From Epithemia pelagica (taxonomy: Eukaryota; Protista; Bacillariophyta), in the NCBI GenBank assembly GCA_946965045.2, contig OX337241.1, positions 2,418,001-2,482,000 on the forward strand: 64,000 nucleotides of DNA. Direction: 5' to 3'. The notes below the pieces were generated by a model. It worked only from the letters and a program-made list of their open reading frames with translations, had not been told where the DNA came from and made no database searches. Position 1 is the first letter of the stretch, and every line of letters starts with the position of its first letter. Below are positions 6,533 to 20,930 of the stretch, piece by piece. A program made the translations under genes and the position numbers.

Positions 6533-8805
6533 ACCGCGGGTATTTTGATCTCAACGCGCCTATTGCAAGCATGTCGGACTACTTTGCCGTACCAAAAGGT
6601 GACAGCGATATTCGTATGGTCTACAACGGCACAAGTTGTGGACTCAACGCATCGTTGTGGGCCCCAAACTTTTGGTTACCATCTTCCGAATCTGCGTTAC
6701 GTCTCCTAACGTGCGATTCCTACTGTGGTGACATGGACTTAGGCGAGATGTTTCTCAACTTCCCGATGGACATTCGCCTTCGTCCATTTGCTGGTGTTGA
6801 TCTAACTCCGTTACGTGACCATCTTGCCACACCACCGTCTGAATCCAAACCCAAGCTCGCACGCTGGAACCGCCTTTTCATGGGCATGTTGCCCAGTCCT
6901 TTCCACGCGGCGCGGCATTACTACATTGCGGAAGAAATGGCCAAGGGATCCCCGCAAGACCCGACGAGCCCGTGTGGGTTTGATGCTGTGCGGTTCAACA
7001 TTCCAGGGTCCGCCGACTACACACCAACACTTCCCTGGGTGATGAAATGGAACTCGAAGCTAGACAACATTGCGGGTGATGTGGTAAGCTATATGGACGA
7101 CCTTCGAACTGTCGGGTCGTCTGCGGAGCACGTATGGCAAGTGGCAAGACGGTTGGGCTCTCGATTACAATACTTGGGCATTCAAGATGCTCCTCGAAAG
7201 CGCCGCCCACCGTCAAAAACACCAGGAGCTTGGGCGGGCAGCGTCCATCACATTTCGGAGTCAGCAGTGTCGAAAACGCTGACGCAAAAGAAATGGGATA
7301 AGGGGAAAGCCCTGTTGAAGAAATACGTGGAAGCGTTTGCCGAAAGCGACGCTCCAATCCTCGACCACAAACAAATGCAGAGAGATGTCGGTTTCTTCGT
7401 CCACCAAGCCTTGACCTTTAGTTCCATGATGCCATTTTTGAAGGGCTTTTACTTGACGATGAATGTCTGGCGGCCGGACCGGAACGGGGATGGCTGGAAG
7501 TTTTCGACAAGAGAATGGATATCTCAGTTGCAGGAAAAACTTTCGGATGCCGAGGTGAATACCTTGTGTGGTTTCCTAGAAGAAGACGAGGAAAGCGAAC
7601 CGTCCATGCAAGATTCAAAGGGGACGAAAGTGCGTTCGGAAAATCCACCGAAGTCAGTGAAAGCTGTTCCGCGTCTCAAGTCGGATGTCAAAGCGCTGGC
7701 AGCGATGCTCGCGGAAGAAGAGCCTCCAAAGGTCCAAGTGAGATCTTCGTCCGTTTACGTGGCCTTGTTTGGGTGTGGAGACGCGTCGGGATGCGGATTC
7801 GGCGCGGCCTTCCAGTTGCCACAGAAGAAATTGTCCTACAGAGTGGGCGTCTGGGGAAGAGACATTGTTGTTGAAGAATCCTCCAACTGGAAAGAGTTTA
7901 CCAACTGTGTTGAGTCGCTCGAGGAAGAAGCAACAACTGGCCAACTTGATTCCACGGAAGTATTCTTCTTCACCGATAATTCCACGGTGGAAAGGTGTTT
8001 CTATAAGGGGTCGTCGTCCAGCCCAAAACTCCTAGACCTCGTAATTCGTTTGAGGCGACTAGAAATGAAGCATGCCCTGAGACTCCATATTTCTCACGTC
8101 TCGGGTAAACGGATGATCGCTGTTGGAGTTGACGGAATTTCAAGAGGTCAGTTGAATGAAGGGGTGATGGCAGGATCGCCTATGCTGTCCTACATCCCCC
8201 TTCACAAAACTCCTATCCAAATGTCAGATACCCTCTTTGAATGGGTCCGATCTTGGTTGGGTGCCAAGACGGAGCTCCTAACCCCCATGGATTGGTTCAC
8301 TACTGGCCATGACATCAGGGGATGGACGCTCCCGTCGGATCATAACGATCTGTCCCTGCCAATCCTTCGGCCAGGACATTTCGTATGGGCTCCTCCCCCG
8401 GGAGGGGCAGACGTGGCTTTAGAAGAGCTTCGAAAAGCCCGTCATAAGCGTCAGTCTTCCATGCACGTCTTCTTGTGCCAACGCTTACTTACACCTAAGT
8501 GGTTTAAACAATTGCACAAGGCTTGCGACCTTGTGCTGGAAATTCCAGCGGGAACTTCGTTTTGGCCTGAAGGAAACTTCGAACCTCTAATCGTTGGTCT
8601 TGTTTTTCCTTTTATCAGGTCACAGCCATGGCAACTCCGAGGAACACCGAAGATGTTCTCAATGGATCGGAAATTGCGCAAAATGTGGAAAGAAGATCCC
8701 GTGGGTGGACGGGATCTTCTGCGCAAATTTTGCGTACAGTGTTGGAAAATGCGCTCCATGTCGGAGCGCATGGTGTCCAGGGTGTTATTCTTTGAGCGAC
8801 GATGA
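6163..8805 (+). CDS. Reverse transcriptase + RNase H (pol) of the DIRS-type element
   Basis: RT motifs GDMDLGEMFLNFP, RLFMGMLPSPF and YMDDLRT. RNase H motifs CGDASGCGFG, SSNWKEF, FFTDNST and VDGISRG. No internal stops. Confidence 0.92.
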   Translation: MVASSTVSKLYRLFTSSVWTGMAIFGVRFDTPGGDSEFSLHSAPLVRAAGCQVLSQLLASTWWDWDEGSSLIFWRWNGLDQQNEAWFGTPIHVTGALPSYHRKQRPPSDDMLAQVGAKLSTVLNRGYFDLNAPIASMSDYFAVPKGDSDIRMVYNGTSCGLNASLWAPNFWLPSSESALRLLTCDSYCGDMDLGEMFLNFPMDIRLRPFAGVDLTPLRDHLATPPSESKPKLARWNRLFMGMLPSPFHAARHYYIAEEMAKGSPQDPTSPCGFDAVRFNIPGSADYTPTLPWVMKWNSKLDNIAGDVVSYMDDLRTVGSSAEHVWQVARRLGSRLQYLGIQDAPRKRRPPSKTPGAWAGSVHHISESAVSKTLTQKKWDKGKALLKKYVEAFAESDAPILDHKQMQRDVGFFVHQALTFSSMMPFLKGFYLTMNVWRPDRNGDGWKFSTREWISQLQEKLSDAEVNTLCGFLEEDEESEPSMQDSKGTKVRSENPPKSVKAVPRLKSDVKALAAMLAEEEPPKVQVRSSSVYVALFGCGDASGCGFGAAFQLPQKKLSYRVGVWGRDIVVEESSNWKEFTNCVESLEEEATTGQLDSTEVFFFTDNSTVERCFYKGSSSSPKLLDLVIRLRRLEMKHALRLHISHVSGKRMIAVGVDGISRGQLNEGVMAGSPMLSYIPLHKTPIQMSDTLFEWVRSWLGAKTELLTPMDWFTTGHDIRGWTLPSDHNDLSLPILRPGHFVWAPPPGGADVALEELRKARHKRQSSMHVFLCQRLLTPKWFKQLHKACDLVLEIPAGTSFWPEGNFEPLIVGLVFPFIRSQPWQLRGTPKMFSMDRKLRKMWKEDPVGGRDLLRKFCVQCWKMRSMSERMVSRVLFFERR

Positions 8806-10189
8806 CCGGTTCTACGTCGCGTCGCGAAACACCATGGTAGAAGAATCGGATCAAGACCGTCTGGTGGCTGAGACTTGGAGGAGTCGCACCAGAGACCGTC
8901 GAGAGGATTTCAATCAAGCACGAGCCGGCGATCACATGGTCACGCCGTTCGAATGCGATTTGTGCGTGTTCCGGAAACTGCGACAAGAGGAGCCTGACTC
9001 GCAAAACCTAAAAGACCAGTACCTTCTCACTTGCATAAGACGAATGAACTTGGACGCCTTTTGGAGCAGGGCTACGAGTACGGTCATGCAGAACACGAGG
9101 AATGCAAAAATGATGATAGAAAAATCCAAGAAAGTTGGGATTCCATTCGGACCCTTCAGAAGCCCTGGTCCTTTCCCTAATTATGACCATTGTGGCTATC
9201 ATGTGGCTTTCCTAATGCTGGATGCGTCGTTGGATCAAGGAAAATATCATCGAGACAGAAAGCAGTTTGATACGATACGAAAATTTCGCTCTACCTATTC
9301 AAATCACGTGAGAGCAACGGCTTCTACGTTGGTAAACGGCCATCCGTTGGTGCTTACAGACAACAATGGAAAGGCCTTTTCCCGAATGGGTCAGGATGAG
9401 AGCGGTTCGTTATGGTTCTCCAGATTTGTGGAAGGATGTCGACGTCGAATGGGCCAAGATTGGCGACCTGATCAGGCCGTGACCAGTGAACTAATGCTAG
9501 CCTTGTTGGGCTCAATTGAAGAGGAGATTCTGGAGAACCGAGAAGAACACGACGCGTTCTTCCTTGTTCTTGCTGGCACCTTCTTTGCTACGTCGTACGT
9601 TTTGTCGTTACGAGGCCCGGAAGGTTTGCTGCTGGACTTGTATGCGCTTGTAAAGTACATGGATCTTTACAAGCAACGAAACTGTATTGTGGTTGGGTTG
9701 TGGGGGCAGTTCAAAGGAGAGCATATGGAACGCTCACACCTTTTGCCATGTTGCGACGAGACCAGCAGTGGAATAAAGATAAGACGATGGATAAATCGGG
9801 CAGTTTGCCTGTCCCAGGAGATGGGACGATGCTCGGGACCATTGATGCTCAATCGCAATGGGACCCCCATCACATCAAGAGCTTTGGACGACACTCTTCA
9901 TCGTCACTTGATAAAAATCTTCGTTGAGCGGAAGGACCTTTTCCCGCTTGCTGCCATCAAAGACGAAGAGGACATTATATCAAGATACGCAGTCTTTCGA
10001 TCCTTCCGAAGAGGATCAAATACGAGAGCCAAAGAAATTGGCGTTGCCACTCCAGACGTTGATACAGTCAACCGCTGGAGAACGAAAGAAAATGCGGGCA
10101 CAAACAAGCCAGGAGCCAGGATAGACCACATGTACGCCGATCTAAACTTGCTTGTGGGTCCGTTCTTGAGGTACACTTGGTCCATGTGA
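8594..10189 (+). CDS. Tyrosine recombinase (integrase) with N-terminal Cys-rich region
   Basis: Catalytic-type motifs LSLRGPEG (Arg), GQFKGE (Lys), RSFRRG and IDHMY (Tyr). Overlaps the pol 3' end by 212 nt in another frame, as is typical for DIRS. Confidence 0.9.
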   Translation: MVLFFLLSGHSHGNSEEHRRCSQWIGNCAKCGKKIPWVDGIFCANFAYSVGKCAPCRSAWCPGCYSLSDDDRFYVASRNTMVEESDQDRLVAETWRSRTRDRREDFNQARAGDHMVTPFECDLCVFRKLRQEEPDSQNLKDQYLLTCIRRMNLDAFWSRATSTVMQNTRNAKMMIEKSKKVGIPFGPFRSPGPFPNYDHCGYHVAFLMLDASLDQGKYHRDRKQFDTIRKFRSTYSNHVRATASTLVNGHPLVLTDNNGKAFSRMGQDESGSLWFSRFVEGCRRRMGQDWRPDQAVTSELMLALLGSIEEEILENREEHDAFFLVLAGTFFATSYVLSLRGPEGLLLDLYALVKYMDLYKQRNCIVVGLWGQFKGEHMERSHLLPCCDETSSGIKIRRWINRAVCLSQEMGRCSGPLMLNRNGTPITSRALDDTLHRHLIKIFVERKDLFPLAAIKDEEDIISRYAVFRSFRRGSNTRAKEIGVATPDVDTVNRWRTKENAGTNKPGARIDHMYADLNLLVGPFLRYTWSM

Positions 10190-10216
10190 TTGTCCAGTCG
10201 AGATTCTCGGTGGAGG

Positions 10217-10643
10217 GGGTTTTGGTTCCTACAAGTTGAGAGAAAGCCGACATGGCAAGGCGTTTTCTCTTCTTGATTGTTGGTTTATGGGTTTGTTCCG
10301 TTACAGTCTGCTGTCCCTTGCCCCCTTTGCGATTGCATGGTGCTACCTGATTGCGTTGGGGGAATCCAGGGGAACAAACAGGAGTCTCGACATGGTTCAT
10401 CTACCCGTGGCTGATAAATTGGTACCCTTAGCTGGTTACAGAACACCGGCTTTGGCCCTGAGTGGAGAAGGTGTCGCCTTCCCCCCACAACACGATCTAA
10501 TCATATGACTATGATCGCGAGAATCTAATTTGTTTAAGTTATTGAGTTGTTTCATCTGTTTGTTCGCCTTGTATCTTTGGCTGCGAGGGATCTCTTGCTT
10601 GGATGGCTACGAGGAAGGGCCCAAGGTCGGCGTGCGAGTGCCC
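10217..10643 (+). repeat. Split direct repeat B1 (427 bp)
   Basis: gggttttggttcctac...gcgagtgccc, repeated at 11182-11608. Confidence 0.95.
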
Positions 10644-11126
10644 TCAATGTACATCAAAGTTTAAGCGGGATCAAGAAGCGGGATTGGACCACGTCACGGA
10701 GCCTGCGCATTGATTGTGAGCGAAGAGAGAGAGCCGGGCGAGATCCAGAGAACATCGCCGGCACACCGAACAGGAAATAGATGAGGCAGAACAGGCGTGC
10801 AATTCGGAAGTCGAATTTGAGAAAGTATGTGTATCGCATCTACTGCGACAAAACACTTCCTGTTCAATCTCTGAAGTGCTATCATGCAAGAACCAAGGAC
10901 TCGGCCTTTCAAGAGACCTGGCTTATATGGAAGCAGACAACAATGCGCCAAAATGAGGTCCCTAGTGGAGCGCAAGCATCGACCAGATCCACTGAGCCAA
11001 AGACGCAACAAACAAGACAAGAGGGAGAAGGAGCTCTCACTCTTTAGATTTCCTACGGTTCGACGGCGAAGGCTTGATCACCTTTGGCGTTGTTCTGAGT
11101 TCTCTGAAGAGCTGAATCTCCAACTT
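10643..11126 (+). repeat. Split direct repeat A2
   Basis: Copy of 1926-2409, directly abutting B1. Confidence 0.95.
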
Positions 11127-11181
11127 TCACAGGCACCAGCTAAGTGCCTAGTATTTTCTTTTTTCCCTCCCTTCCCGCCCT

Positions 11182-11608
11182 GGGTTTTGGTTCCTACAAG
11201 TTGAGAGAAAGCCGACATGGCAAGGCGTTTTCTCTTCTTGATTGTTGGTTTATGGGTTTGTTCCGTTACAGTCTGCTGTCCCTTGCCCCCTTTGCGATTG
11301 CATGGTGCTACCTGATTGCGTTGGGGGAATCCAGGGGAACAAACAGGAGTCTCGACATGGTTCATCTACCCGTGGCTGATAAATTGGTACCCTTAGCTGG
11401 TTACAGAACACCGGCTTTGGCCCTGAGTGGAGAAGGTGTCGCCTTCCCCCCACAACACGATCTAATCATATGACTATGATCGCGAGAATCTAATTTGTTT
11501 AAGTTATTGAGTTGTTTCATCTGTTTGTTCGCCTTGTATCTTTGGCTGCGAGGGATCTCTTGCTTGGATGGCTACGAGGAAGGGCCCAAGGTCGGCGTGC
11601 GAGTGCCC
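11182..11608 (+). repeat. Split direct repeat B2 (3' terminus of the element)
   Basis: Copy of 10217-10643. Identity ends after gagtgccc. Confidence 0.95.
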
Positions 11609-11715
11609 AACGATCCCCGAAAACTCTGAGCCAACAACATGAAACGCCTTAGCGTCTTTAATTATCCGTTAATGAAAAGGGAGTGCTTCACTACATGAGA
11701 AAAAATCAATTAATA

Positions 11716-11745
11716 TTACCGTAAAATCACATCTATTGCACCATC
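11716..11745 (+). repeat. Left terminal inverted repeat of the MULE-like element
   Basis: ttaccgtaaaatcacatctattgcaccatc is the reverse complement of 18290-18320 apart from one A in the A-run. Confidence 0.88.
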
Positions 11746-12142
11746 CGTTGAAATTTTCAGGCTCGCGTTCTATATGCACAATGTGTACCACCCAACGGAT
11801 TGGTGGTTAATTTTCCGAATCAATTATAGATTATTTCCGAATTATGTTTGAATGTATAACATCATAAGTATTTTTAATTGAACAATCTTGAGAAGCTCAT
11901 TCGAAAGAGACTCCCGATTAAACACACCCAGTTTTTCAATCCCATTTCCTTTTAAAACTCCGGGTACCCTTCCAATCACGCACGCCCCCCGGCCAAGGGC
12001 TAGTCGCCTATGTATTCCAAAGAGCATTGGATATATAGACAAACAACACGCTTTCATCGTGACCATAAAATTGGCCACCCCGCGCTGGACAAATTCAAAT
12101 CCATTTCCAGTTCAAAAACCGTCACATAGTTTGCATCCTATC

Positions 12143-15100
12143 ATGGTGGACAATAACGCTCAGCCCCTATCTGAGGATAACCTGGTTCCTATCCAAGATC
12201 TAACACAACAATACCTGGATGATCTCTTTGCATCATTGGACAAAGAATGGCACTCGCCACTACAATTCCAAATGCATGTAGGCAACAATTGTGCCAACAG
12301 TGACACAACTGTGGAACTGGACATTTGTGCCTTCTTTGGCCGACTACAAGCAGCGAATGGCATCAAGGGCAAGTACGCATACTTTGATCGTAGCACATAC
12401 CCTCCTCTCCAATCTGCAGATGAACTCTCAAAGGAAGGCAATTCAATGGCAAATCTTCACCAAGATTTAGTTGCAAAATCTTTAACATCCGGTTTTGTTC
12501 TTGTGAGCAACGGTAACTCCACCAAGAATTCTGCGCTTGCTTCCCGTAAACACTTCCCTGAAGGAAGTTCCCCTCCCTTTTTTTTCAAGAACCTTTTGAT
12601 GTGAACGTTACAGAGTCTACCGAAAGCGTAAAGCAAGTGATGAACCTTCCATTCAGCAATACCGTGGCATTTCTTTGCACAACAATCAACGAGCTAATAG
12701 TCGAGGACCGGAGGGTAGGAAACAAGCGCGTAAACGCATCACCAACCGAGCACTACATCGTGATCATACTTGCTCTTTTCATTTCACGGTCTTTGCCAAT
12801 TCCAAAGGTTTCTATATCACCAGAGTCGCCGGGAATGCATGTCACTGCAACCACATGAAGAAGATGTCATCTGACATTCCATTTCGCATTAGGAACTTTA
12901 CTGCTCAACAACGCAAACGTGCGGGTGAACTTGGCAATGCATTTACAGGACCAGCGGCTGGTCGCAACTACTTCCACGCTAATGGCAATTTGACCATTAC
13001 TCGTGATCAAATGCGATATGCTTTTCGTGTGACTGACACAACAGGAATGTACCACTTTGATGGAATACGTGCATCTGCAGAAGCCGTAGTTGAATGGCTT
13101 CGTACTGCCGAAAGTTTAAGCTACTGCATTTGGGGAGCGCGCCCAGACAGTGTTACCGATGCTCATATGGAACGGCAGTCAGGGTTAATCTTCAATGAGA
13201 ACAAAGAAGAAGATGGGAACCACAGTGTTTCAGCCTTGACTCACTTTTGTCAAGAGATCCTCCATGAATATACTACTGAAATGGAAAATCTGAAACTTGA
13301 TGTTGACCAGAATATGTTCATTGCTTGTGCTTGGATCACGAATAAGGAGCGGCGAATGTTTCGACTGTTTCCGCATGTACTGAAGATTGATGTCACCAAA
13401 GGAACAAATAGAGAAAACCGCCCCTTAATGACTGTGTCAATGCGCACGGCCTATGGAAAATATCTTGTCATCATGCGAATGTTTCTATCCAATGAGAGAA
13501 GAACAACATTTCGATGGGTTTTCTGCATTGCTTTTCCGACTCTTCTTGGAACACAGTGGATAGCACGGGTCAAGGCCATAGTAACTGATGGAGACTCCCA
13601 TGAAATTGAAGAATTGGAAGAATTGATGCGTCGATACATGCCACACTGCATCAGAATCCGTTGTGGCTGGCATATCATTTTCAAGGGTTGGAGTAGGCAG
13701 TGCTCCATTGAGGGAGCAATTCCACGGGAATACAAACGCACATACCGGCAATTTGCAACCACTGTAAAGAAGTGGTGTTACTCATTCATGTATCCACGCT
13801 ACTGTGAAAGTGAACACGAACTCCACATCTCAAAATGTCTTCTTCTTGCCTTTGTTTACTCCAGGCCTGTTCGCACTTTCTTGACCCCCCAGCTCCGGAA
13901 AGTTATCCACAACTTTCTTATTGGCTATGTCTTTGTTCACGACAGGCACTTGTGCTTCCATTATCGTAAAGGAATCTGCTATTATGAAGAATCGACAAAC
14001 AGCAGTCATGAAGGCACAAATCTTGGCTTAAAGGAACATTCTGCACCAGTGTTGGCCAACAGAACTGTTGCATTCAATGCAGCTATGCTCAAGCTCCAGT
14101 CTGACATGGCCATTGATGAACAGATGCATCGTGCGTCCTCAAGTGTAGAAGCAACGGCCACCTGGACAAACCGCCTTCCAGCCAACGGTTTTGTCACAGA
14201 ATTGTGTCTTGATCTGGCAACAAAATCATGGAATTTCGGGAAGAACTATAGTGTCCGTCGTGCACCTGTCCCCTTTTCTCCATGGCAATGGCACGTTGTT
14301 ATAAGCGACCCCTCTATTGTCAACAATGAAAAAAAACATTTGCTTCCTGTGTGGCATCGCACTCGATGTGTACATCTGAACAAAATGGGACGCCTGGAGT
14401 GCACCTGTATGTCTTTTGAACAACGCGGGATACCATGTGCTCACCAAGCAGCTGTGCTTATGCACGAGTATCCTAGCTACAAAGGATTTACCCACCATGA
14501 TGTGAGTATTGTGTGGTGGAAGAAACATGTCTTCCTTGGTCTCCGTGACGGGAATAACAATGTTGATGAGTGCATCCAGCACTTGCTGGACAACGACATA
14601 TCAGGACCTAAATTTCCCCTTCCCCTTCAAAATATAGATGGCTGGACAGAAGGCCCGTACAACACGGGAGACAATCCCATCAAATTCAAACATCTGCACG
14701 TTGATCCAAAAAGTAGTTGTGTGAACTATACAGAAGATCAAATACTGCGTGCTATCAATACATTTGGAGGAAGCCTTGTCTCAAATGCAACAGCAACAAC
14801 AACAACAACAAGGGAAACGGAGATATGTCCCGATCCTGGATATCTGTCCCAAGAATGTTTTGTCACAAATGATGACATCACAAACAATGCTTACACAACC
14901 CAAATGCCAGCATTTCCTTCGTTTACAGATGGCCAAGGCACGTACGACGCGCATTTCTCCACCCAGGAGAGTGAGGAGAATGAAATTTTCCTGCAGGCAA
15001 TTGAAGAAGAAGCTGGGGAGCAAATGACAACACAACAATTCATTTCATGTATTCGCGAAGAGGTTTCAGAACTACAGGATCTTTTCCGGTCTGGTAACTA

Positions 15101-15290
15101 TGTCGCTTCTGATCACAATCTTTTATCCCATCTTGAGTCATTTCGCCAACTACGTCGAGACATACGCCGGAAAATGGCAGAACGGGGACATCACAACCAA
15201 GGTCAGGAATGGGTTTCGGCCAATGCTGAACAAACCCAGCATAAACGTCGTTTCCGTGGTGCCACATTAGGTCTGACGTCTTTCACCTAG
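12143..15290 (+). pseudogene. MULE-family DDE transposase with SWIM zinc finger; 5' part disrupted (frameshift at T8 run 12578-12585 plus TGA at 12597-12599) unless removed by an intron
   Basis: Motifs LKIDVTKGTNRENRPL (D1), IVTDGDSHE (D2), RCGWH (CxxH), SHEGTN (E) and SWIM CTCMSFEQRGIPCAH in ORF 12675-15290. Its frame is open upstream to 12600. The N-terminal piece (ATG 12143 to about 12585) is in another frame. Confidence 0.8.
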
Positions 15291-15356
15291 TTTGTAAAAC
15301 TCCTATAACAGATCTAAACAATATTGTGCGTTTGTTTATGCAACATATGTTTTACT

Positions 15357-16778
15357 TTAATGACTTGTTTTGTTCTTGGCAGCTGCCAAAATTGCTTTTT
15401 CATTGTCCGTGATAGAAATTGTGTTGTCGTTCTTACCCACCACTGCAGTCTTCAAATAGCATGTCAGACAAAAGATGTCATGTTTGGTTGCCCGCTTGGA
15501 GACACAATGGTACTCAAGAGGATTGAAAATGATGATGTCGAGGTGTCGTAACGCCACAACTTGTCCATGTTCTGAGAAGACAAATTGAGCCAAAACTTCA
15601 TCCTTGTCTTTGTTACTTGGTTCCACAAGCATGACGACAGAAATGGACAGACCAAAGTCGTTGTCTGTATGGGCTTGAAGGAAAACGTTTCGTCCGAACG
15701 CAACAGAGGAGAAGAAATGTGTACTTTTCCCCTTGTGGGACCACAACTTGAATTCACCATTTCTTGCAGCGTTCTCGAACGCAAAAGAATAAGACCAGTC
15801 AATCCATTTTTCCAGCTGTGTCTCAAGCTGTTTGATGAATTGTAAGATTACCCATTTCTCCTTTGCTTTCAACTTAGAAAACTTTGAATCTACCAGCCCT
15901 TTTCTTCCCCGATTTGCATGGACACCAAGAGTGATGTAGTTTGTCTTGTGTTCATCACATCCGACATAACGTGACTTGCCACGTGATTGATGGTTGCATG
16001 TTGTCTCCAACTTCTCAAGAACATCAAGTAGGTACTGTGTCACATTATCACTTGTTAGAATTTGACGTGGCGGTTTGAGAAACGCAGGTAGTTTCTGGTT
16101 ATCTGGAGGAAAGATACTTCCTTGGTCACCAGACTCTCCAATTACTTTCCAGCTTGACAAGGAAACAGGGTGGGGGACATTTGGAGTGCATTTGGATAGC
16201 TCCAGCGGACCATCGGTAGGGTCATTTGTGAAGACTAGGCAGAACTTTTGTAGAACAGAAGAAGAAATCTTCAATGAATCAGGTGCTTCGGTAATCTCTT
16301 TCAATGCGTCTTCCTGCTTTTGTCTCTTCTTATTCCGGCAATATCGTTGTGCAGAAGACCTTGGCATGGAAGATGCTTTGGCAACCAAAGCAGCAACTTG
16401 TGTCCTTTGAGAACATGGTTTGTTGGACTTGAACACATGAAAAGCATTAGTAACATCAAAGCCTGTATGTTCTTCAGCTATGTTCTGCAGAATCTCATCC
16501 TGACTTAATCTCCGTGCAAGCCCCCCCGTACTTTTGTTGGCATGTACATTTGAAGATGTACTGCCTAAGCACTGGGCGGTGAGAGCCTGACCATTATGGT
16601 CTGGTTCTAAACGACCTCCCTTGAGGGCTTGCTTGGACATCACCCACGACAAATCCTGATGTAGACAACCAAAAAGACCCCAAATTCCAAAATCAAATCG
16701 CTTCTGAAGGACCAAAGCAATCAAACCAAGCAAGGTATCGTTAGAACTGTCTTGAAAAAGGGCTTTCCAACGAGCCAT
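15357..16778 (-). CDS. TET/JBP-like Fe(II)-dependent dioxygenase (473 aa ORF)
   Basis: C-terminal double-stranded beta-helix signature FSSVAFGRNVFLQAHTDNDF (HxD)...IIIFNPLEYHCVS (distal His)...CLTCYLK. The spacing resembles TET/JBP enzymes. The true 5' end is uncertain because it lies in the tandem array. Confidence 0.7.
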   Translation of the reverse strand: MARWKALFQDSSNDTLLGLIALVLQKRFDFGIWGLFGCLHQDLSWVMSKQALKGGRLEPDHNGQALTAQCLGSTSSNVHANKSTGGLARRLSQDEILQNIAEEHTGFDVTNAFHVFKSNKPCSQRTQVAALVAKASSMPRSSAQRYCRNKKRQKQEDALKEITEAPDSLKISSSVLQKFCLVFTNDPTDGPLELSKCTPNVPHPVSLSSWKVIGESGDQGSIFPPDNQKLPAFLKPPRQILTSDNVTQYLLDVLEKLETTCNHQSRGKSRYVGCDEHKTNYITLGVHANRGRKGLVDSKFSKLKAKEKWVILQFIKQLETQLEKWIDWSYSFAFENAARNGEFKLWSHKGKSTHFFSSVAFGRNVFLQAHTDNDFGLSISVVMLVEPSNKDKDEVLAQFVFSEHGQVVALRHLDIIIFNPLEYHCVSKRATKHDIFCLTCYLKTAVVGKNDNTISITDNEKAILAAAKNKTSH

Positions 16779-17858
16779 TCAATGTTGAAATCCGACTTAC
16801 ATGTAGAAAGTTATCAAGGGTAGTAGGAGAGGGTGCTGGAACAGCCACCAAAAAGACCCCAAATTCCAAAATCAAATCGCTTCTGAAGGACCAAAGCAAT
16901 CAAACCAAGCAAGGTATCGTTAGAACTGTCTTGAAAAAGGGCTTTCCAACGAGCCATTCAATGTTGAAATCCGACTTGCATGTAGAAAGTTATTAAGGGT
17001 AGTAGGAGAGGGTGCTGGAACGGCCACCAAAAAGACCCCAAATTCCAAAATCAAATCGCTTCTGAAGGACCAAAGCAATCAAACCAAGCAAGGTATCGTT
17101 AGAACTGTCTTGAAAAAGGGCTTTCCAACGAGCCATTCAATGTTGAAATCCGACTTACATGTAGAAAGTTATCAAGGGTAGTAGGAGAGGGTGCTGGAAC
17201 AGCCACCAAAAAGACCCCAAATTCCAAAATCAAATCGCTTCTGAAGGACCAAAGCAATCAAACCAAGCAAGGTATCGTTAGAACTGTCTTGAAAAAGGGC
17301 TTTCCAACGAGCCATTCAATGTTGAAATCCGACTTGCATGTAGAAAGTTATTAAGGGTAGTAGGAGAGGGTGCTGGAACAGCCACCAAAAAGACCCCAAA
17401 TTCCAAAATCAAATCGCTTCTGAAGGACCAAAGCAATCAAACCAAGCAAGGTATCGTTAGAACTGTCTTGAAAAAGGGCTTTCCAACGAGCCATTCAATG
17501 TTGAAATCCGACTTGCATGTAGAAAGTTATTAAGGGTAGTAGGAGAGGGTGCTGGAACGGCCACCAAAAAGACCCCAAATTCCAAAATCAAATCGCTTCT
17601 GAAGGACCAAAGCAATCAAACCAAGCAAGGTATCGTTAGAACTGTCTTGAAAAAGGGCTTTCCAACGAGCCATTCAATGTTGAAATCCGACTTACATGTA
17701 GAAAGTTATCAAGGGTAGTAGGAGAGGGTGCTGGAACAGCCACCAAAAAGACCCCAAATTCCAAAATCAAATCGCTTCTGAAGGACCAAAGCAATCAAAC
17801 CAAGCAAGGTATCGTTAGAACTGTCTTGAAAAAGGGCTTTCCAACAAGCCATTCAATG
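16669..17858. repeat. Tandem array, 179-bp unit x about 6.6 copies
   Basis: ccaaaaagacccc recurs at 16669, 16848, 17027, 17206, 17385, 17564 and 17743. Full units differ at only three transition sites. Confidence 0.97.
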
Positions 17859-18289
17859 CAACATGCAAGTACAAAGGTAGTAGGTGATTTTCTTCGGGAG
17901 ACCGTTGGAAGAGGGGACAGTTGATACACGTGCCTTGACACGTGCCTGGAGCGGCAGCATGGGGTGCTGACAGGCGTGGGAATGCAGATGGGGTCAGTTC
18001 TTATGCGACTGAAAAACTGGGTGTGGTTAATCGGGATTAGGCGCTTTCCAAATCACTGCGGTTCGTGAAAATCGGACTTACCCTTCCCATAATATCGACG
18101 ATTGAAAATTCGTCAGTGTTCGTGCGAAAGATAAGGATTTTTTGCCATGGCTTCTCCCCCCACCCTCTCCACCACGATGGCAATGCTCCGTGGTGGAGGG
18201 AGTGGGGCTCTGTTGGAGGGAGAGGCACGCGATTTTTGGGTAGGGCGCGCTCATTCTACAGGTAAATCGTGCGTTTTCTGCACCAATAC

Positions 18290-18320
18290 GATGGTGCAAT
18301 AGATGTGATTTTTACGGTAA
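18290..18320 (-). repeat. Right terminal inverted repeat of the MULE-like element
   Basis: gatggtgcaatagatgtgatttttacggtaa. Confidence 0.88.
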
Positions 18321-18621
18321 GCGCTATGCTATTACAAGCGCTAGGGATACCAAATTCTGGTCGCAGTCGCAGAAGTATGGAGAAGGGCGTGCGCGTGCGC
18401 GTGGATGCGAGATTCATTCTCACGCCAGCCAGTCCTCGCTTCCGGCGTTCTCTCCCTCCGGTCGACCCACCAAGAGAGAGTTTTCTTGTTGTTGTAGATT
18501 GTCCATGGCAGCAAGCTGAACGTTCGCCTTGAGCTTGTAGTGTTTTGTCTAGTGCAGGATAGAAATAGTTTGTTGCAACGAACCCAACCAAATCAGTCAA
18601 GACAAAACAATACCAACCAGC

Positions 18622-19580
18622 ATGGCATCTTCACCCAGCGATGAGGATTGGAAAAAGGTGACCAAGTTGGTCGATCAATTCATGAATCGACCCGATACAG
18701 GTACAAAGAAACCATATAGTTTGTTCAGAGTCTCCTTCTTTCTTCTTGTATGCATGTTCTCAATTCCATCCTTTTCATTATTCGTTGGAACATGACAGAG
18801 CCGTTTCGAGAGCCCGTGGATTGGAAGGCGCTCGGTAAGTCTAATGCAACGAGCCTAAGTACAACAATGGCAAGAAAAGGACGCATCTAACGGTTCGTTT
18901 GGCACGTACATAAACCTACAACACCGCTGCTTTCTATTCTACCAGGCTTGTTTGATTATCCCAAAATTGTCCCCGAGCCCATGGATTTGGGCACGGTGAA
19001 GAAAAAGTTGCAGAAAAAAGAGTACAAAACCTTGCAACAAGTCGGATTGGATGTGCGAAAAATATGGTCCAATTGTCAAGATTACAATCAAGAGGGGTCC
19101 GATTTTCACAAATTGGCGGGGACGTTGCGAAAACGATGGGATGACAAATTTACCAAATTGGTGGCCGACAGTCGATCGGCTACCACTACGAGTGGTACTA
19201 CCAGTGCGGGGGATGCCCCCATGGATGTGGAGGCCACACCAGCAGCTCCACCACCACCGTCCCAACCACCCATTTCCACCTTGGCCGAACGCAAATCCTT
19301 TGCCAAATCCTTGTTTGCGTTGACCAAGGAAGATTTGGGGAAATTGTTGGTGGAAATTGAAGCCAAATGTCCATCGGCCTTGACACGGAATGCGGCCGAA
19401 GATGAAGTCGAAGTCAATGTGGACAAGTTGTCCTCGGCGCTCTTGTTGGAACTCTCCGTCTTTGTGGCATCCACGACCCAAAAACCACCCAAGGCATCCA
19501 ACAGTAAAAAGGGAGGATCCAATTCCAACAAGCGTGCCAAAACTAACCCCAAACCTGCTGCATCGGCAGCTTCCAACTAG
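18622..19580 (+). CDS. BET/GTE-type bromodomain + ET (NET) domain protein; exons 18622-18700, 18799-18834, 18946-19580
   Basis: GT-AG splicing gives [34 protein letters not shown]...IWSNCQDYN (bromodomain). ET domain TLAERKSFAKSLFALTKEDLGKLL...EVEVNVDKL. Confidence 0.9.
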
Positions 19581-20096
19581 ACCAACTCTCTCTCTCTCTC
19601 TGTCTACTGCTACACTTTTTACTTCTGCTACTGTGTGTCTACTTTCTTTGGGGGGAGTAGAGATAGTGAACGGTTTGGCGCAAGGCACTGGTCCAACGAC
19701 ACGCACCATCCGTCGGAGGCATAAGGTTGCCGACCTTCCAAGGGAGAGTCCACGGGAGCGATACAAGAGGTGCGGATAGACCACGGCAATCACACAACAG
19801 TGTGTTCCATCCAGCGTAGACAGCAGCACACGCTCCTCTTTCCTCTCTTTTGTATGGATACGCCAACGAGAGAGAAACGTGCGGACTGGACACGATTTGC
19901 AGCATTGGGTCTCCTGGAAATTTTGGAAACGCCAGAAACGAAACCACCGGTCGAACGGAGACATTGCAATCATGTTTCAAAACTGTGGACCTGTCCACGA
20001 TATGGCTGTGCCGTCGCTTCGGATCCGTCGATTCGTTTCAGGAGTTCATTCTTTTTGACCCCGAGAGTCCTGTTGTATACCATCCCTACGTGTCCC

Positions 20097-20930
20097 ATGA
20101 TGCTGGTTTCGTTTGTGACTGCCGTATTCCCCTGGATTGTCGTCGTCGTCTCGGCCCAACACCAACTTCAACAAGACATGCCCCGTTGGTCGTCTGTGGT
20201 GGTGCCATCCTCCGAGTTACGACAACAAGACGACGAACCGCAGCAACGAAGCACTCGAGGACAATCACCACCACGTCTCCTAGATACGTGGGAACTCGTT
20301 TCTCGAGCGTTGGATGCTACTTCGACAACCTCTTCCCGAGAAGCTCGCAGGGACGAACCACACGAAGAAAGTAGCAGTCGCGGCAAATCCCGATTCTCCA
20401 AGCCTCGTGGTTTGGGAGCCAAAGAGACCATGTACGAGCAACACAAGGAGCGCAAGACGGAAAAGTCGAGAGGTTTGACAACGTCGGGCATGAAAGGCAG
20501 CGATGCGTACCACAAACAGGGCAAGGCTTGGAAATTTCACAAGGCGAACACAACGGCGGCAGCGGCGACCAACTTGGAAGATACGGAGGAATTGGTCCAT
20601 GCACTTTGCGACATGTGGGAGGTATTTAATGAAATGGGACGCCACGAAAACCGGGACTTGAACAATCCTCATTGGTCCAGTTTGTGCGATGACTTTGAGT
20701 CGTTGGACAAGTACTTGTGTCCTCCACGGGAATTGGTGGAGGAGGCCATTTGCACCCATACACGGCCGTACTTGGATCCGGCCGTCCGCACCCGGTACTG
20801 TCAACCTCTCACGTCGTACATTGTGGACCATGACAGTTTTCGTGACAAGTGTGTGTCTTGGTGTACCAATTATGTTAGTCATGCTCGTGGAAACTGTTGC
20901 GAGATTGGCTGTCCCACTCCGAGCTATTAA
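20097..20930 (+). CDS. Putative secreted protein with Cys-rich C-terminus
   Basis: Signal-peptide-like MMLVSFVTAVFPWIVVVVSA at ATG 20097, within ORF 19770-20930. About ten Cys in the C-terminal third. Confidence 0.55.
   Translation: MMLVSFVTAVFPWIVVVVSAQHQLQQDMPRWSSVVVPSSELRQQDDEPQQRSTRGQSPPRLLDTWELVSRALDATSTTSSREARRDEPHEESSSRGKSRFSKPRGLGAKETMYEQHKERKTEKSRGLTTSGMKGSDAYHKQGKAWKFHKANTTAAAATNLEDTEELVHALCDMWEVFNEMGRHENRDLNNPHWSSLCDDFESLDKYLCPPRELVEEAICTHTRPYLDPAVRTRYCQPLTSYIVDHDSFRDKCVSWCTNYVSHARGNCCEIGCPTPSY

Follow-up and report, generated by a model that had tools for sequence, protein, structure and literature searches.

The locus examined here raises the question of whether a Mutator-like transposon of the diatom Epithemia pelagica encodes an enzyme with which it could alter the methylation of its own DNA. 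The original prediction, made for a window of 64,000 nucleotides (contig OX337241.1, positions 2,418,001 to 2,482,000), described a MULE/SWIM transposase, a convergent open reading frame resembling the TET/JBP dioxygenases and a tandem array within one pair of terminal inverted repeats (TIRs), and read these as a candidate anti-silencing system. That a MULE carries a TET/JBP-fold accessory gene can be stated with high confidence, while the substrate and co-substrate of the enzyme, its nuclear location, the splicing of its transcript and the anti-silencing effect are what we infer, the last of these by analogy with known systems and from signs of CpG methylation on the element.

The inverted repeat which was taken to bound the transposon (11719-18317) is real, pairing 11716-11745 with 18290-18320 (30 of 31 nt, one indel), and two matches to its 23-nt core were obtained in none of 100 shuffled sequences; it bounds another element, however. 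An inner pair of TIRs at 11912-11945 and 18003-18036 (34 nt, 91% identical) still encloses both genes and the array. Copies at the allelic loci L004/L013 and at L012, 96-98% identical to the window copy, match it from 11910 to about 18040 only, and the outer repeat is absent at these insertions; as the other insertions of the family show those ends, the inner pair is assigned to the MULE. The TIR on the transposase side (11910..11945, plus strand) begins ACTCCCGATTAAA, with homology to the other copies from 11910 and the inverted repeat itself from 11912, while on the dioxygenase side (18003..18036, minus strand) the match to the other copies runs to about 18040, with the transposon-free form resuming at 18039. 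This form was found in DNA reads of the organism, in which 18039-18319 follows the window's 11885-11908 sequence directly and with zero differences, and it represents the outer element without the transposon. Contigs span 18039-18319 at high depth, again with zero differences, and their flanks diverge past 18320. The outer pair is a separate, short, multi-copy inverted-repeat (MITE-like) element, without assigned strand, of which the left part (11716..11911, TIR 11716-11745) and the right part (18041..18320, TIR 18290-18320) now flank a MULE copy of approximately 6.1 kb inserted into it. No direct repeat of 8-11 nt with at most one mismatch was detected within 40 nt of the ends of the window copy or at L004/L013, and only at L012 was a degenerate 10-11-nt candidate target-site duplication seen by eye; the exact termini are asymmetric, and their placement may be off by a few bases.

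Assignment of the element to the Mutator (MULE/MuDR) superfamily is based on its transposase domains and on TIRs shared by independent copies. The plus-strand ORF of 871 aa at 12675-15290 matches the Pfam models PF21056 (ZSWIM1-3_RNaseH-like, 7e-12), PF10551 (MULE, 3.7e-9; 37.4 bits against a cut-off of 27.6) and PF04434 (SWIM, 4.5e-5), and the transposase of a sister family matches PF10551 at 1.3e-14. The domains thus agree with those predicted, but the gene (12143..15290, plus strand, likely start ATG 12143) is not intact in the window copy, where a run of eight T residues at 12578-12585 (seven in other copies) causes a +1 frameshift and a TGA at 12597-12599 replaces the CGA of other copies. 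At L012 a single continuous ORF of 1177 codons runs through the junction that is broken here. The transposase of the family, a protein of about 1,050 aa, is thus lost in the window copy and intact elsewhere in the genome, and for its movement the window copy would depend on transposase made by intact copies, for example the one at L012.

Convergent to the transposase lies the minus-strand ORF of 473 codons (15357-16778) to which the HxD...H motif had been ascribed, and this motif is borne out by 102 relatives of the protein. H370 (codon 15669-15671) is invariant among them, while D372 (15663-15665), D374 (15657-15659), H424 (15507-15509), Y441, K443 (15450-15452) and R266 (15981-15983) are each kept in at least 90%; in a domain alignment of 75 sequences H370, H424 and K443 are invariant. 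The putative iron-binding triad is therefore conserved within the family. In TET2 and NgTET1, 2-oxoglutarate (2OG) is held by two arginines (R1261/R1896 and R224/R289, respectively; PMC7854593). Judged from sequence, the nearly invariant R266 is a candidate for the first of these, while the near-invariant K443, within Y-L-K-T, falls by its spacing alone about where the second would be expected; R429 is common among the relatives but not invariant. The second 2OG-binding arginine of the TETs thus appears to be replaced by lysine. The next Asp follows HxD at +4 rather than +5 and the base-stacking position carries no aromatic residue, so that the substrate and co-substrate may differ from those of TETs.

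The assignment of this protein to the TET/JBP enzymes is supported by its fold and not by Pfam models. The window protein gave no Pfam match at E values up to 1, so that the comparison of 15357-16778 with Tet_JBP (PF12851) did not reach threshold. Among the 102 relatives nine have sub-threshold PF12851 matches (best 0.0023) and one a sub-threshold match to PF20515 (2OG-FeII_Oxy_6, 0.015); profile searches of PDB sequences with the dioxygenase family found no TET, and language-model neighbours of the protein carry PF12851 and PF20515. The structure model (pLDDT 85.5, core above 90) matched TET2, CMD1, CcTet or NgTET1 in all of its best 16 PDB structures (Z 13.9-18.3, 228-290 residues aligned), led by TET2 at 18.3 (282 residues) and followed by CMD1 at 15.8, CcTet at 15.1 and NgTET1 at 15.1, with a clear gap to FTO at 11.4. 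The same ranking was obtained with an earlier, shallower model. In the AlphaFold database (AFDB), JBP2, JBP1 and NgTet were the top Swiss-Prot matches, and the clusters returned included a 'Tet-like 2OG-Fe(II) oxygenase', a 'JBP1/TET' and a KDZ-transposase-associated protein. On the strength of this model, the cargo protein is placed in the TET/JBP structural clade; a separate DNA-binding domain was not seen in it.

Association of the dioxygenase with the transposon is not confined to the window. The same termini occur with different flanks at the window, L004/L013 and L012, representing three independent insertions and one allele, and the L004/L013 and L012 copies carry the dioxygenase gene between these TIRs at other sites than the window. 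At least five protein copies of the window family and at least seven of a sister family were counted, and a deletion derivative is present in the reads. Four MULE families of the genome, with transposases 23-58% identical, carry an intact dioxygenase gene (36-45% identity in tblastn against the loci) convergent to the transposase and inside their own TIRs, which measure 36-53 nt in the three sister families. The enzymes of the four families form one exclusive clade (support 0.999, 75 family representatives), whose unrooted topology agrees with that of the transposases. The homologues in this genome are multi-copy and without exception face a MULE transposase in convergent orientation between TIRs, as opposed to being single-copy host genes, and the dioxygenase is a transposon-borne TET in the sense of PMC12730594, being located inside the termini, multi-copy and travelling with the element. 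Distant relatives of the dioxygenase in other organisms adjoin helicase genes and not MULE transposases.

At the 5′ end of the dioxygenase ORF a tandem array was indeed present, consisting of 6.7 units of 179 bp (16668..17858, minus strand) that match each other at 98% and overlap the first 111 nt of the ORF. It resembles a spliced 5′ leader more closely than a binding array of the VANC type, a system which the original prediction had cited. An array of 178-179 bp is found in all four families, every unit of which contains GTAAGT together with a pyrimidine-rich ...CAG acceptor, and a TTCTAAC-type branch motif occurs in three of the four families, being not found in L001. For the window, splice-signal prediction on the minus strand placed donors at 17695, 17516, 17337, 17158, 16979 and 16800 and acceptors ending at 17778, 17599, 17420, 17241, 17062, 16883 and 16704, so that the array may be read as reiterated modules of a 97-nt intron and an 82-nt exon. 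The predicted introns (80-97 nt) are comparable to a verified host intron of 73 nt, and the predicted exons are devoid of ATG and not multiples of three in length, the ATGs falling in predicted introns. The first 46 codons of the 473-codon ORF lie inside a predicted array intron, and in alignment the paralogues begin at the position of M47; the array is thus probably a multi-intron, AUG-free leader and M47 the true start, giving a presumed gene of 15357..16640 (minus strand, 427 aa, stop at 15357-15359). Upstream, the pre-array region (17859..18002, minus strand) presumably holds the promoter and first exon; it contains CAACTGTC, starting at 17923 on the minus strand, and the motif which it has in common with the three other families is CAACTGCC.

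Evidence that the element has itself been a target of methylation comes from its CpG content. The observed/expected CpG ratio is 0.64 for the element and 0.5 for the enzyme gene and array as compared to 0.91 for the window, GpC being unchanged, and 24 of 79 substitutions between two copies are CpG transitions, approximately 6-fold over other sites; the stop in the transposase is itself a CGA>TGA, or CpG>TpG, change. Both the depletion and the transition excess point to past methylation of the element, and the decay is strong enough to show that the family is not kept free of methylation by the enzyme. A dN/dS of about 1 for the enzyme gene between two copies, based on 18 changes only, is as expected for dead copies but lends no support of its own.

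By analogy, the element probably interferes with the methylation of its own DNA, and we lean slightly towards a chain of events in which a MULE with a TET/JBP-fold enzyme eases its silencing by oxidising a methylated base. Transcription of the dioxygenase gene would begin, probably, between the TIR and the array, and the array would be transcribed as a leader in which short introns alternate repeatedly with mini-exons free of AUG, with translation from M47. The product would be a nuclear Fe(II)-dependent dioxygenase that most likely oxidises a methylated DNA base, the best guess being 5-methylcytosine at CpG, and by acting on the element and its relatives it would weaken methylation-based silencing such that transposase and enzyme stay expressed.

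An enzyme that modifies DNA bases without erasing the mark, either by hydroxylating thymine like JBP or by adding a bulky group to 5-methylcytosine like CMD1 with vitamin C, the new mark then regulating transcription or transposition of the element, is in our estimation unlikely. The leading positions of JBP2 and JBP1 among the reviewed AFDB matches and of CMD1 among the best PDB matches are in its favour, as are the seeming lysine and the differing base-recognition positions in alignment (PMC7854593) and the additional activity of NgTET1 on thymine (PMC12344493). The highest Z score, however, belongs to TET2, and the element contains no glycosyltransferase or other partner gene. In other enzymes with a double-stranded beta-helix (DSBH) a lysine can serve to bind 2-oxoglutarate, so that this enzyme too may use that co-substrate. 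Less likely again, and indeed very improbable, is an activity of the dioxygenase on RNA or protein, for instance that of an AlkB/FTO-type demethylase or of a protein hydroxylase, or a passenger gene that has no role for the element. FTO, AlkB and ALKBH proteins do match the fold at Z 10-11.4, the protein falls short of the TET/JBP sequence models, and the helicase neighbourhoods of the distant relatives fit such a reading, but the TET/JBP-clade structures are ahead by 2.5-7 Z units over about 280 residues that include clade-specific N-terminal helices, and a mere passenger would have lost its integrity, its place or its orientation in the time that the transposases diverged to 23% identity.

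As regards the array, it is possible, albeit doubtful, that it has another role in place of, or besides, that of a spliced leader, either offering the transposase or dioxygenase a series of repeated binding sites, such as VANC has in VANDAL21, or phasing promoter chromatin as a module of nucleosome length. In agreement with a role as DNA, the period of 178-179 bp is kept in the four families despite differing intron/exon splits (97+82, 80+98 and 96+83), L002 has a further in-frame repeat of period 180, copies differ in unit number from 2 to 6.7, and tandem arrays of red-algal Plavaka elements adjoin a 2OG-oxygenase accessory gene (10.1101/2025.02.11.637652). Against this, units of different families are barely alignable save for the splice signals (only those of the window and L001 align, at 61%), so that no shared binding motif is evident, and the enzyme model lacks a separate DNA-binding domain; the two roles are nevertheless compatible with each other. 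A more elaborate scheme, which we consider improbable, joins them in a two-layer self-defence, where the nucleosome-length unit would be both multi-intron leader and phased chromatin array over the promoter. Repeated splicing would tag the transcript as 'genic' and shield it from RNA-based silencing, and CpG methylation at the array would be rewritten by the Lys-type TET-fold enzyme, whose co-substrate or product might be unusual. What selection keeps would be the period, and neither the sequence nor the way in which a unit is divided into intron and exon.

Mobile DNA that edits the methylation marks of its host has its clearest candidates in transposons with TET-type enzymes. In fungi ten lineages of TET-carrying transposons have been described, none of them MuDR (Kojima 2025, PMC12730594), the TET/JBP carriers comprising Kyakuja-Dileera-Zisupton, Plavaka, EnSpm, hAT, Harbinger, IS3EU, ESTA and Helitron (PMC12730594, and Iyer 2014 as far as cited there). 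Like these, the present element is of the cut-and-paste type, holds a TET/JBP-fold accessory gene within its ends and occurs in many copies and several lineages; escape from 5mC silencing has likewise been proposed for the fungal elements, proteins of which are among the AFDB neighbours of the window protein. It differs from them in its Mutator transposase, which is outside the ten fungal lineages, in its diatom-like algal host, in an enzyme too divergent for PF12851 and PF20515 with an apparent lysine for the second 2OG arginine, and in the 179-bp exon-intron-like array that precedes the gene. The literature searched, in agreement with the original prediction, contained fungal and Chlamydomonas cases and no TET carried by a Mutator element or described in a diatom. 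In a diatom-like alga, Mutator transposases and a highly divergent enzyme of the TET fold have a deep association and diverge together, which extends the phenomenon to another transposon superfamily and another eukaryotic supergroup. The dioxygenase family, with about 1,450 cluster representatives outside current Pfam models, offers a testable enzyme whose lysine may mean new chemistry, and the conserved array may be a new device by which a transposon ensures that a TET-type gene is expressed, a proposal that is concrete and easy to test. As diatom methylomes and gene-editing tools exist, the anti-silencing idea is directly testable.

Other systems resemble the element in part. VANC is, according to the original prediction, a protein unrelated to TET/JBP. 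VANDAL21 of Arabidopsis is, as far as cited in PMC12730594 and 10.1101/2025.02.11.637652, a MuDR-type anti-silencing system, and in these accounts it resembles the present element as a member of the Mutator superfamily with internal tandem motifs and its own factor against epigenetic silencing, while its short VANC-binding motifs are unlike 179-bp units with splice signals. In Chlamydomonas, DNA-1_cRei carries CMD1 and Helitron2 families carry TET/JBP genes (10.1101/2022.06.16.496473); DNA-1_cRei is similarly an algal transposon with a TET homologue, and CMD1 (structure in PMC7854593), which matches the model of the window protein at Z 15.8, shows that 2-oxoglutarate need not be the co-substrate of a TET-type enzyme. 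Unlike the window element, DNA-1_cRei is of 18.4 kb with four genes, has no recognisable transposase, MULE or other, resides in a green alga and has no described tandem leader array. The red-algal Plavaka PAG3, a protein with a ParB-like domain and a 2OG oxygenase whose gene is adjacent to tandem arrays (10.1101/2025.02.11.637652), is likewise a 2OG-oxygenase accessory of a DNA transposon for which self-modification of the element has been proposed. It differs in its ParB-like DNA-binding domain, arrays of inverted repeats and Plavaka transposase, and its best reported HHpred hit is 2OPW (e-value 0.016) and not a TET/JBP entry.

The transposon was found to comprise a + strand transposase ORF of 871 aa (12675-15290), a convergent - strand dioxygenase ORF of 473 aa (15357-16778), and a tandem array of 6.7 units of 179 bp (16668-17858) which overlaps the first 111 nt of the dioxygenase ORF. 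The original prediction of an element in which a MULE/SWIM transposase (+) is convergent to an HxD...H ORF (-) with an array at the 5′ end of the latter was thereby largely borne out; its terminal inverted repeats (TIRs) had to be reassigned. Two nested inverted-repeat pairs surround the genes, an outer pair of 30/31 nt (11716-11745 / 18290-18320), previously taken for the TIRs, and an inner pair of 34 nt with 91% identity (11912-11945 / 18003-18036). Copies of the same family in the assembly holding the window (ENA ERZ21939226), namely L004, its apparent allele L013, and L012, are 96-98% identical to the window in a region restricted to 11910 to ~18040, and the outer inverted repeat is absent from all three copies examined. 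Three insertions whose flanks are unrelated share an identical transposase-side terminus, beginning ACTCCCGATTAAA, and the opposite end of the transposon starts with (C)GATTAAC. Some contigs from three DNA runs of the organism span 18039-18319 with zero differences and at high depth; in these the sequence of 11885-11908 directly precedes 18039-18319, and the flanks diverge beyond 18320. As the other copies lack the outer repeat and the reads contain the outer element in a transposon-free form, the outer pair was rejected as the TIRs of the transposon and assigned to a separate multi-copy element of ~480 bp, into which the transposon has inserted. The inner pair marks the ends of the transposon proper, ~6.13 kb in length, and encloses both transposase and dioxygenase, so that the proposed association of the two genes within one pair of TIRs holds, albeit not for the repeat pair that had been named. 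A target-site duplication, a hallmark of Mutator elements, was not found at any of the three insertions, a degenerate 10-11-nt candidate being discerned by eye at L012 only.

The ~480-bp host element (11716-11911 + 18041-18320) possesses 30-nt inverted repeats and, owing to its high depth and varied flanks past 18320 in the DNA runs, where it is free of the MULE, constitutes a separate multi-copy MITE-like family, at which no target-site duplication was observed. Just left of the transposon an exact 144-nt direct repeat is present at 10500-10643 and 11465-11608, 965 nt apart, along with ORFs at 10236-10508 and 11144-11473, and this probably represents the terminal repeat structure of an element ending there.

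The + strand ORF is a Mutator-type transposase, with matches to the Pfam families ZSWIM1-3_RNaseH-like (7e-12), MULE (3.7e-9) and SWIM (4.5e-5), all above Pfam cut-offs. In L012 the transposase is encoded by a single ORF of 1177 codons, likely starting at the methionine of MVDN to give a protein of ~1,050 aa, close in size to the transposase of a sister family (1047 aa). The window copy is non-autonomous, as its transposase gene carries two lesions, the first being a +1 frameshift (T8 at 12578-12585 as compared to T7 in L004 and all read contigs) and the second a TGA codon at 12597-12599 where other copies have CGA. The TIRs are both retained, and the second gene is intact. A contig from the reads of run X3, in which 12432 is joined to an array unit at 16755 with 4,322 nt skipped and 28 other letters between, suggests the existence of deletion derivatives built from the ends and the array. 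The window copy also lacks a 24-nt in-frame insertion which other copies carry at 14924, in the C-terminal region of the transposase. In the sister family L001 the element at 8388-20865 has an internally deleted transposase (residues ~298-773 missing) and an intact dioxygenase gene. Its right part occurs twice, the right TIRs lying at 13949-13993 and 20821-20865, and the two right-part copies are separated by a helicase-like gene (Herpes_ori_bp/AAA_30).

In silico analysis of the second gene established 11 relatives of its product in a word-indexed search and 1,447 at E <= 0.001 when 1.84 billion representatives were searched with a profile; conservation was assessed in three alignments, of 10, 102 and 75 sequences. 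H370 shows no variation in any of them, H424 and K443 are invariant in those of 10 and 75 sequences, and D372, D374, Y441 and R266 are conserved in at least 90% of the aligned relatives. The proposed resemblance to TET/JBP enzymes was supported by the predicted fold but not by Pfam, as the window protein gave no Pfam hit, no hit reached threshold in the family, and Tet_JBP was touched, below threshold, by just 9 of 102 relatives. Membership of the TET family was not proven by Pfam searches of the protein and its 10 and 102 aligned relatives or by phmmer against the PDB, and full-length and domain-only profiles retrieved nothing relevant from PDB sequences. The AlphaFold2 model built on the 102-sequence alignment had a pLDDT of 85.5, with residues 88-470 mostly above 90 and residues 1-87 disordered. 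Structural comparison of this model with VIA-align returned TET/JBP-clade proteins as the best 16 PDB entries, including human TET2 (Z 18.3 over 282 residues), CMD1 (15.8), CcTet (15.1) and NgTET1 (15.1), followed by FTO (11.4) and then AlkB proteins. Foldseek searches of the PDB, AFDB clusters and Swiss-Prot models agreed, with JBP1/JBP2, 'Tet-like 2OG-Fe(II) oxygenase' proteins and a KDZ-transposase-associated protein among the matches, and the nearest language-model neighbours in Atlas were unnamed clusters with a Bacillariophyta label, after which came clusters with PF12851 or PF20515. In this analysis the diatom affinity of the source is based on those labels, the host Dis3 protein indicating no more than a eukaryote. 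The protein is thus concluded to combine a well-supported TET/JBP-type fold and a metal triad that is intact, yet, judged by sequence, it lies outside the Pfam TET/JBP families as now defined. The co-substrate and base-binding positions appear to differ from the key residues of canonical TETs (PMC7854593): by sequence spacing only, K443 sits about where TET2 R1896 / NgTET1 R289 would be expected, the conserved Asp that follows HxD occupies position +4 as compared to the canonical +5, and the stacking position is not occupied by an aromatic residue. Two run searches gave, besides DNA runs of the organism, a single contig (149-151 nt) from an environmental metatranscriptome, which matches the best-conserved stretch of the dioxygenase gene (15795-15943) at 98% identity and 3 differences; it may represent DNA carry-over and does not prove expression of the gene.

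The three closest paralogues of the dioxygenase in the same assembly are 36-45% identical to it by tblastn to the loci (38-47% by protein alignment), and each is convergent to a MULE/SWIM transposase gene and enclosed by TIRs of its own (36-53 nt). Mutual identity is 41-58% among the window, L001 and L003 transposases, and the L002 transposase is just 23-26% identical to these. At least five and at least seven protein copies were counted for two of the families. These homologues are therefore not single-copy host genes unlinked to TIRs or transposases, in keeping with the original prediction. Among 75 family representatives placed in a tree, the four enzymes linked to MULEs formed an exclusive clade (support 0.999), and their unrooted topology, pairing the window with L001 and L002 with L003, equals that of the transposases, although with four taxa this agreement is weak. 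As the convergent linkage within TIRs spans four diverged, multi-copy families whose enzymes form an exclusive clade, recent capture of a passenger gene was excluded, and the matching topology is consistent with one ancient capture, after which enzyme and transposase diverged together. The dN/dS between two copies rested on too few changes to be informative. More distant relatives, 28-32% identical, occur on metagenomic contigs, one a 12-kb contig of ERZ27250427 and the others from Logan, where the convergent neighbour is an SF2 helicase gene of 858-895 aa (DEAD/ResIII/Helicase_C), accompanied by an unannotated 577-658-aa gene, with no MULE transposase beside them. The enzyme family thus extends beyond MULEs, and in other organisms it may be carried by, or act together with, another system. 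JBP2 is itself a helicase joined to an oxygenase.

The CpG observed/expected ratio is 0.64 for the transposon and ~0.5 for the enzyme gene and array, as compared to 0.91 for the whole window and 0.92 for a neighbouring young retrotransposon, with GpC unchanged where CpG is depleted. In addition, 24 of the 79 substitutions between the window copy and L004 are transitions at CpG sites, which make up ~6.5% of positions, and the transposase stop codon that helps to kill the window copy is a CGA>TGA change. This depletion, the excess of CpG transitions and the stop codon fit long-term CpG methylation of the family, which would provide the enzyme with something to act on; the decay also shows any protection to be far from complete. 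An anti-silencing function of the element is, we infer, plausible. The presence of TET/JBP genes in fungal DNA transposons is established for Dileera, Kyakuja, Zisupton, hAT, Harbinger, IS3EU, EnSpm, ESTA, Plavaka and Helitron lineages, MuDR being listed in the same study solely with VANC and SET cargo (Kojima 2025, PMC12730594). Similarly, Chlamydomonas has TET/JBP-bearing transposons, namely DNA-1_cRei with CMD1 and Helitron2 families (10.1101/2022.06.16.496473), and red-algal Plavaka elements carry the 2OG oxygenase PAG3 beside tandem arrays, for which the best reported HHpred match is 2OPW rather than a TET/JBP entry (10.1101/2025.02.11.637652). In agreement with the original statement for diatoms, no description of a Mutator transposase paired with a TET/JBP-type dioxygenase was found in the searchable literature, outside which lie most subscription journals and Repbase. 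As far as we can tell, several results are new here: the reassigned ends and the nesting of the insertion, the disruption of the transposase, the co-divergence of enzyme and transposase at clade level, the evidence from CpG decay and the exon-intron reading of the array.

Each of the four MULE families has an array with a period of 178-179 bp separating the TIR from the enzyme gene, of 2 to 6.8 units (2 to 6.7 within the window's family), the units of the window and L001 having 61% aligned identity and the other families only short common patches. In the orientation of the gene every unit carries a 5′ splice site of consensus GTAAGT (GCAAGT in three units of the window, GT in every matched unit of the intact L012) and a pyrimidine-rich ...CAG acceptor, and three of the four families have, in addition, a branch motif of the TTCTAAC type, L001 being the one in which none was found. 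The predicted introns are 80-97 nt long, an intron of the host Dis3 gene, verified through the conserved HFTSPIRR|YAD motif, measuring 73 nt (GTAAGA...TTCCAG). As neither the periods of 178-179 bp nor the predicted exons of 82, 82, 98 and 83 nt are multiples of three, coding repeats were excluded, and a structured or known RNA was likewise excluded, as the array had no Rfam match at E <= 0.1 and a fold energy no better than that of shuffles (z +1.25); no box C motif was seen by eye in a predicted intron. ATG occurs in each predicted intron and in no predicted exon (rotation control ~0.04 if the families are taken as independent). The 473-aa start at 16778 was dropped, as this first ATG falls within the last predicted intron, residues 1-87 are disordered in the model, and the paralogues begin at the equivalent of the next in-frame ATG (M47, 16640), which opens MSKQALKGGRLEP. 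Owing to the splice signals in every unit, the ATG-free exons and the alignment of M47 with the paralogue starts, the array is read as a predicted multi-intron, AUG-free 5′ leader. The sum of intron and exon stays at 178-179 across families though the split varies, and in L002 a 180-bp-period repeat (10038-10511; 2.6 copies, 98%) runs in frame through the N-terminal coding region of its dioxygenase paralogue P0004, with the 178-bp non-coding array, of nearly equal period, just upstream. Both observations hint, speculatively, that the DNA period itself, close to nucleosome length, is under constraint. A CAACTG(C/T)C motif, located at 17916-17923 in the window, is present between TIR and array in all four MULE families and is a candidate for a promoter element driving the dioxygenase gene. 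A metagenomic relative with 30% identity (L010) also has a tandem repeat, of 150 bp x 2.6 (221-608; 75% matches), immediately upstream of its dioxygenase ORF and running into it.
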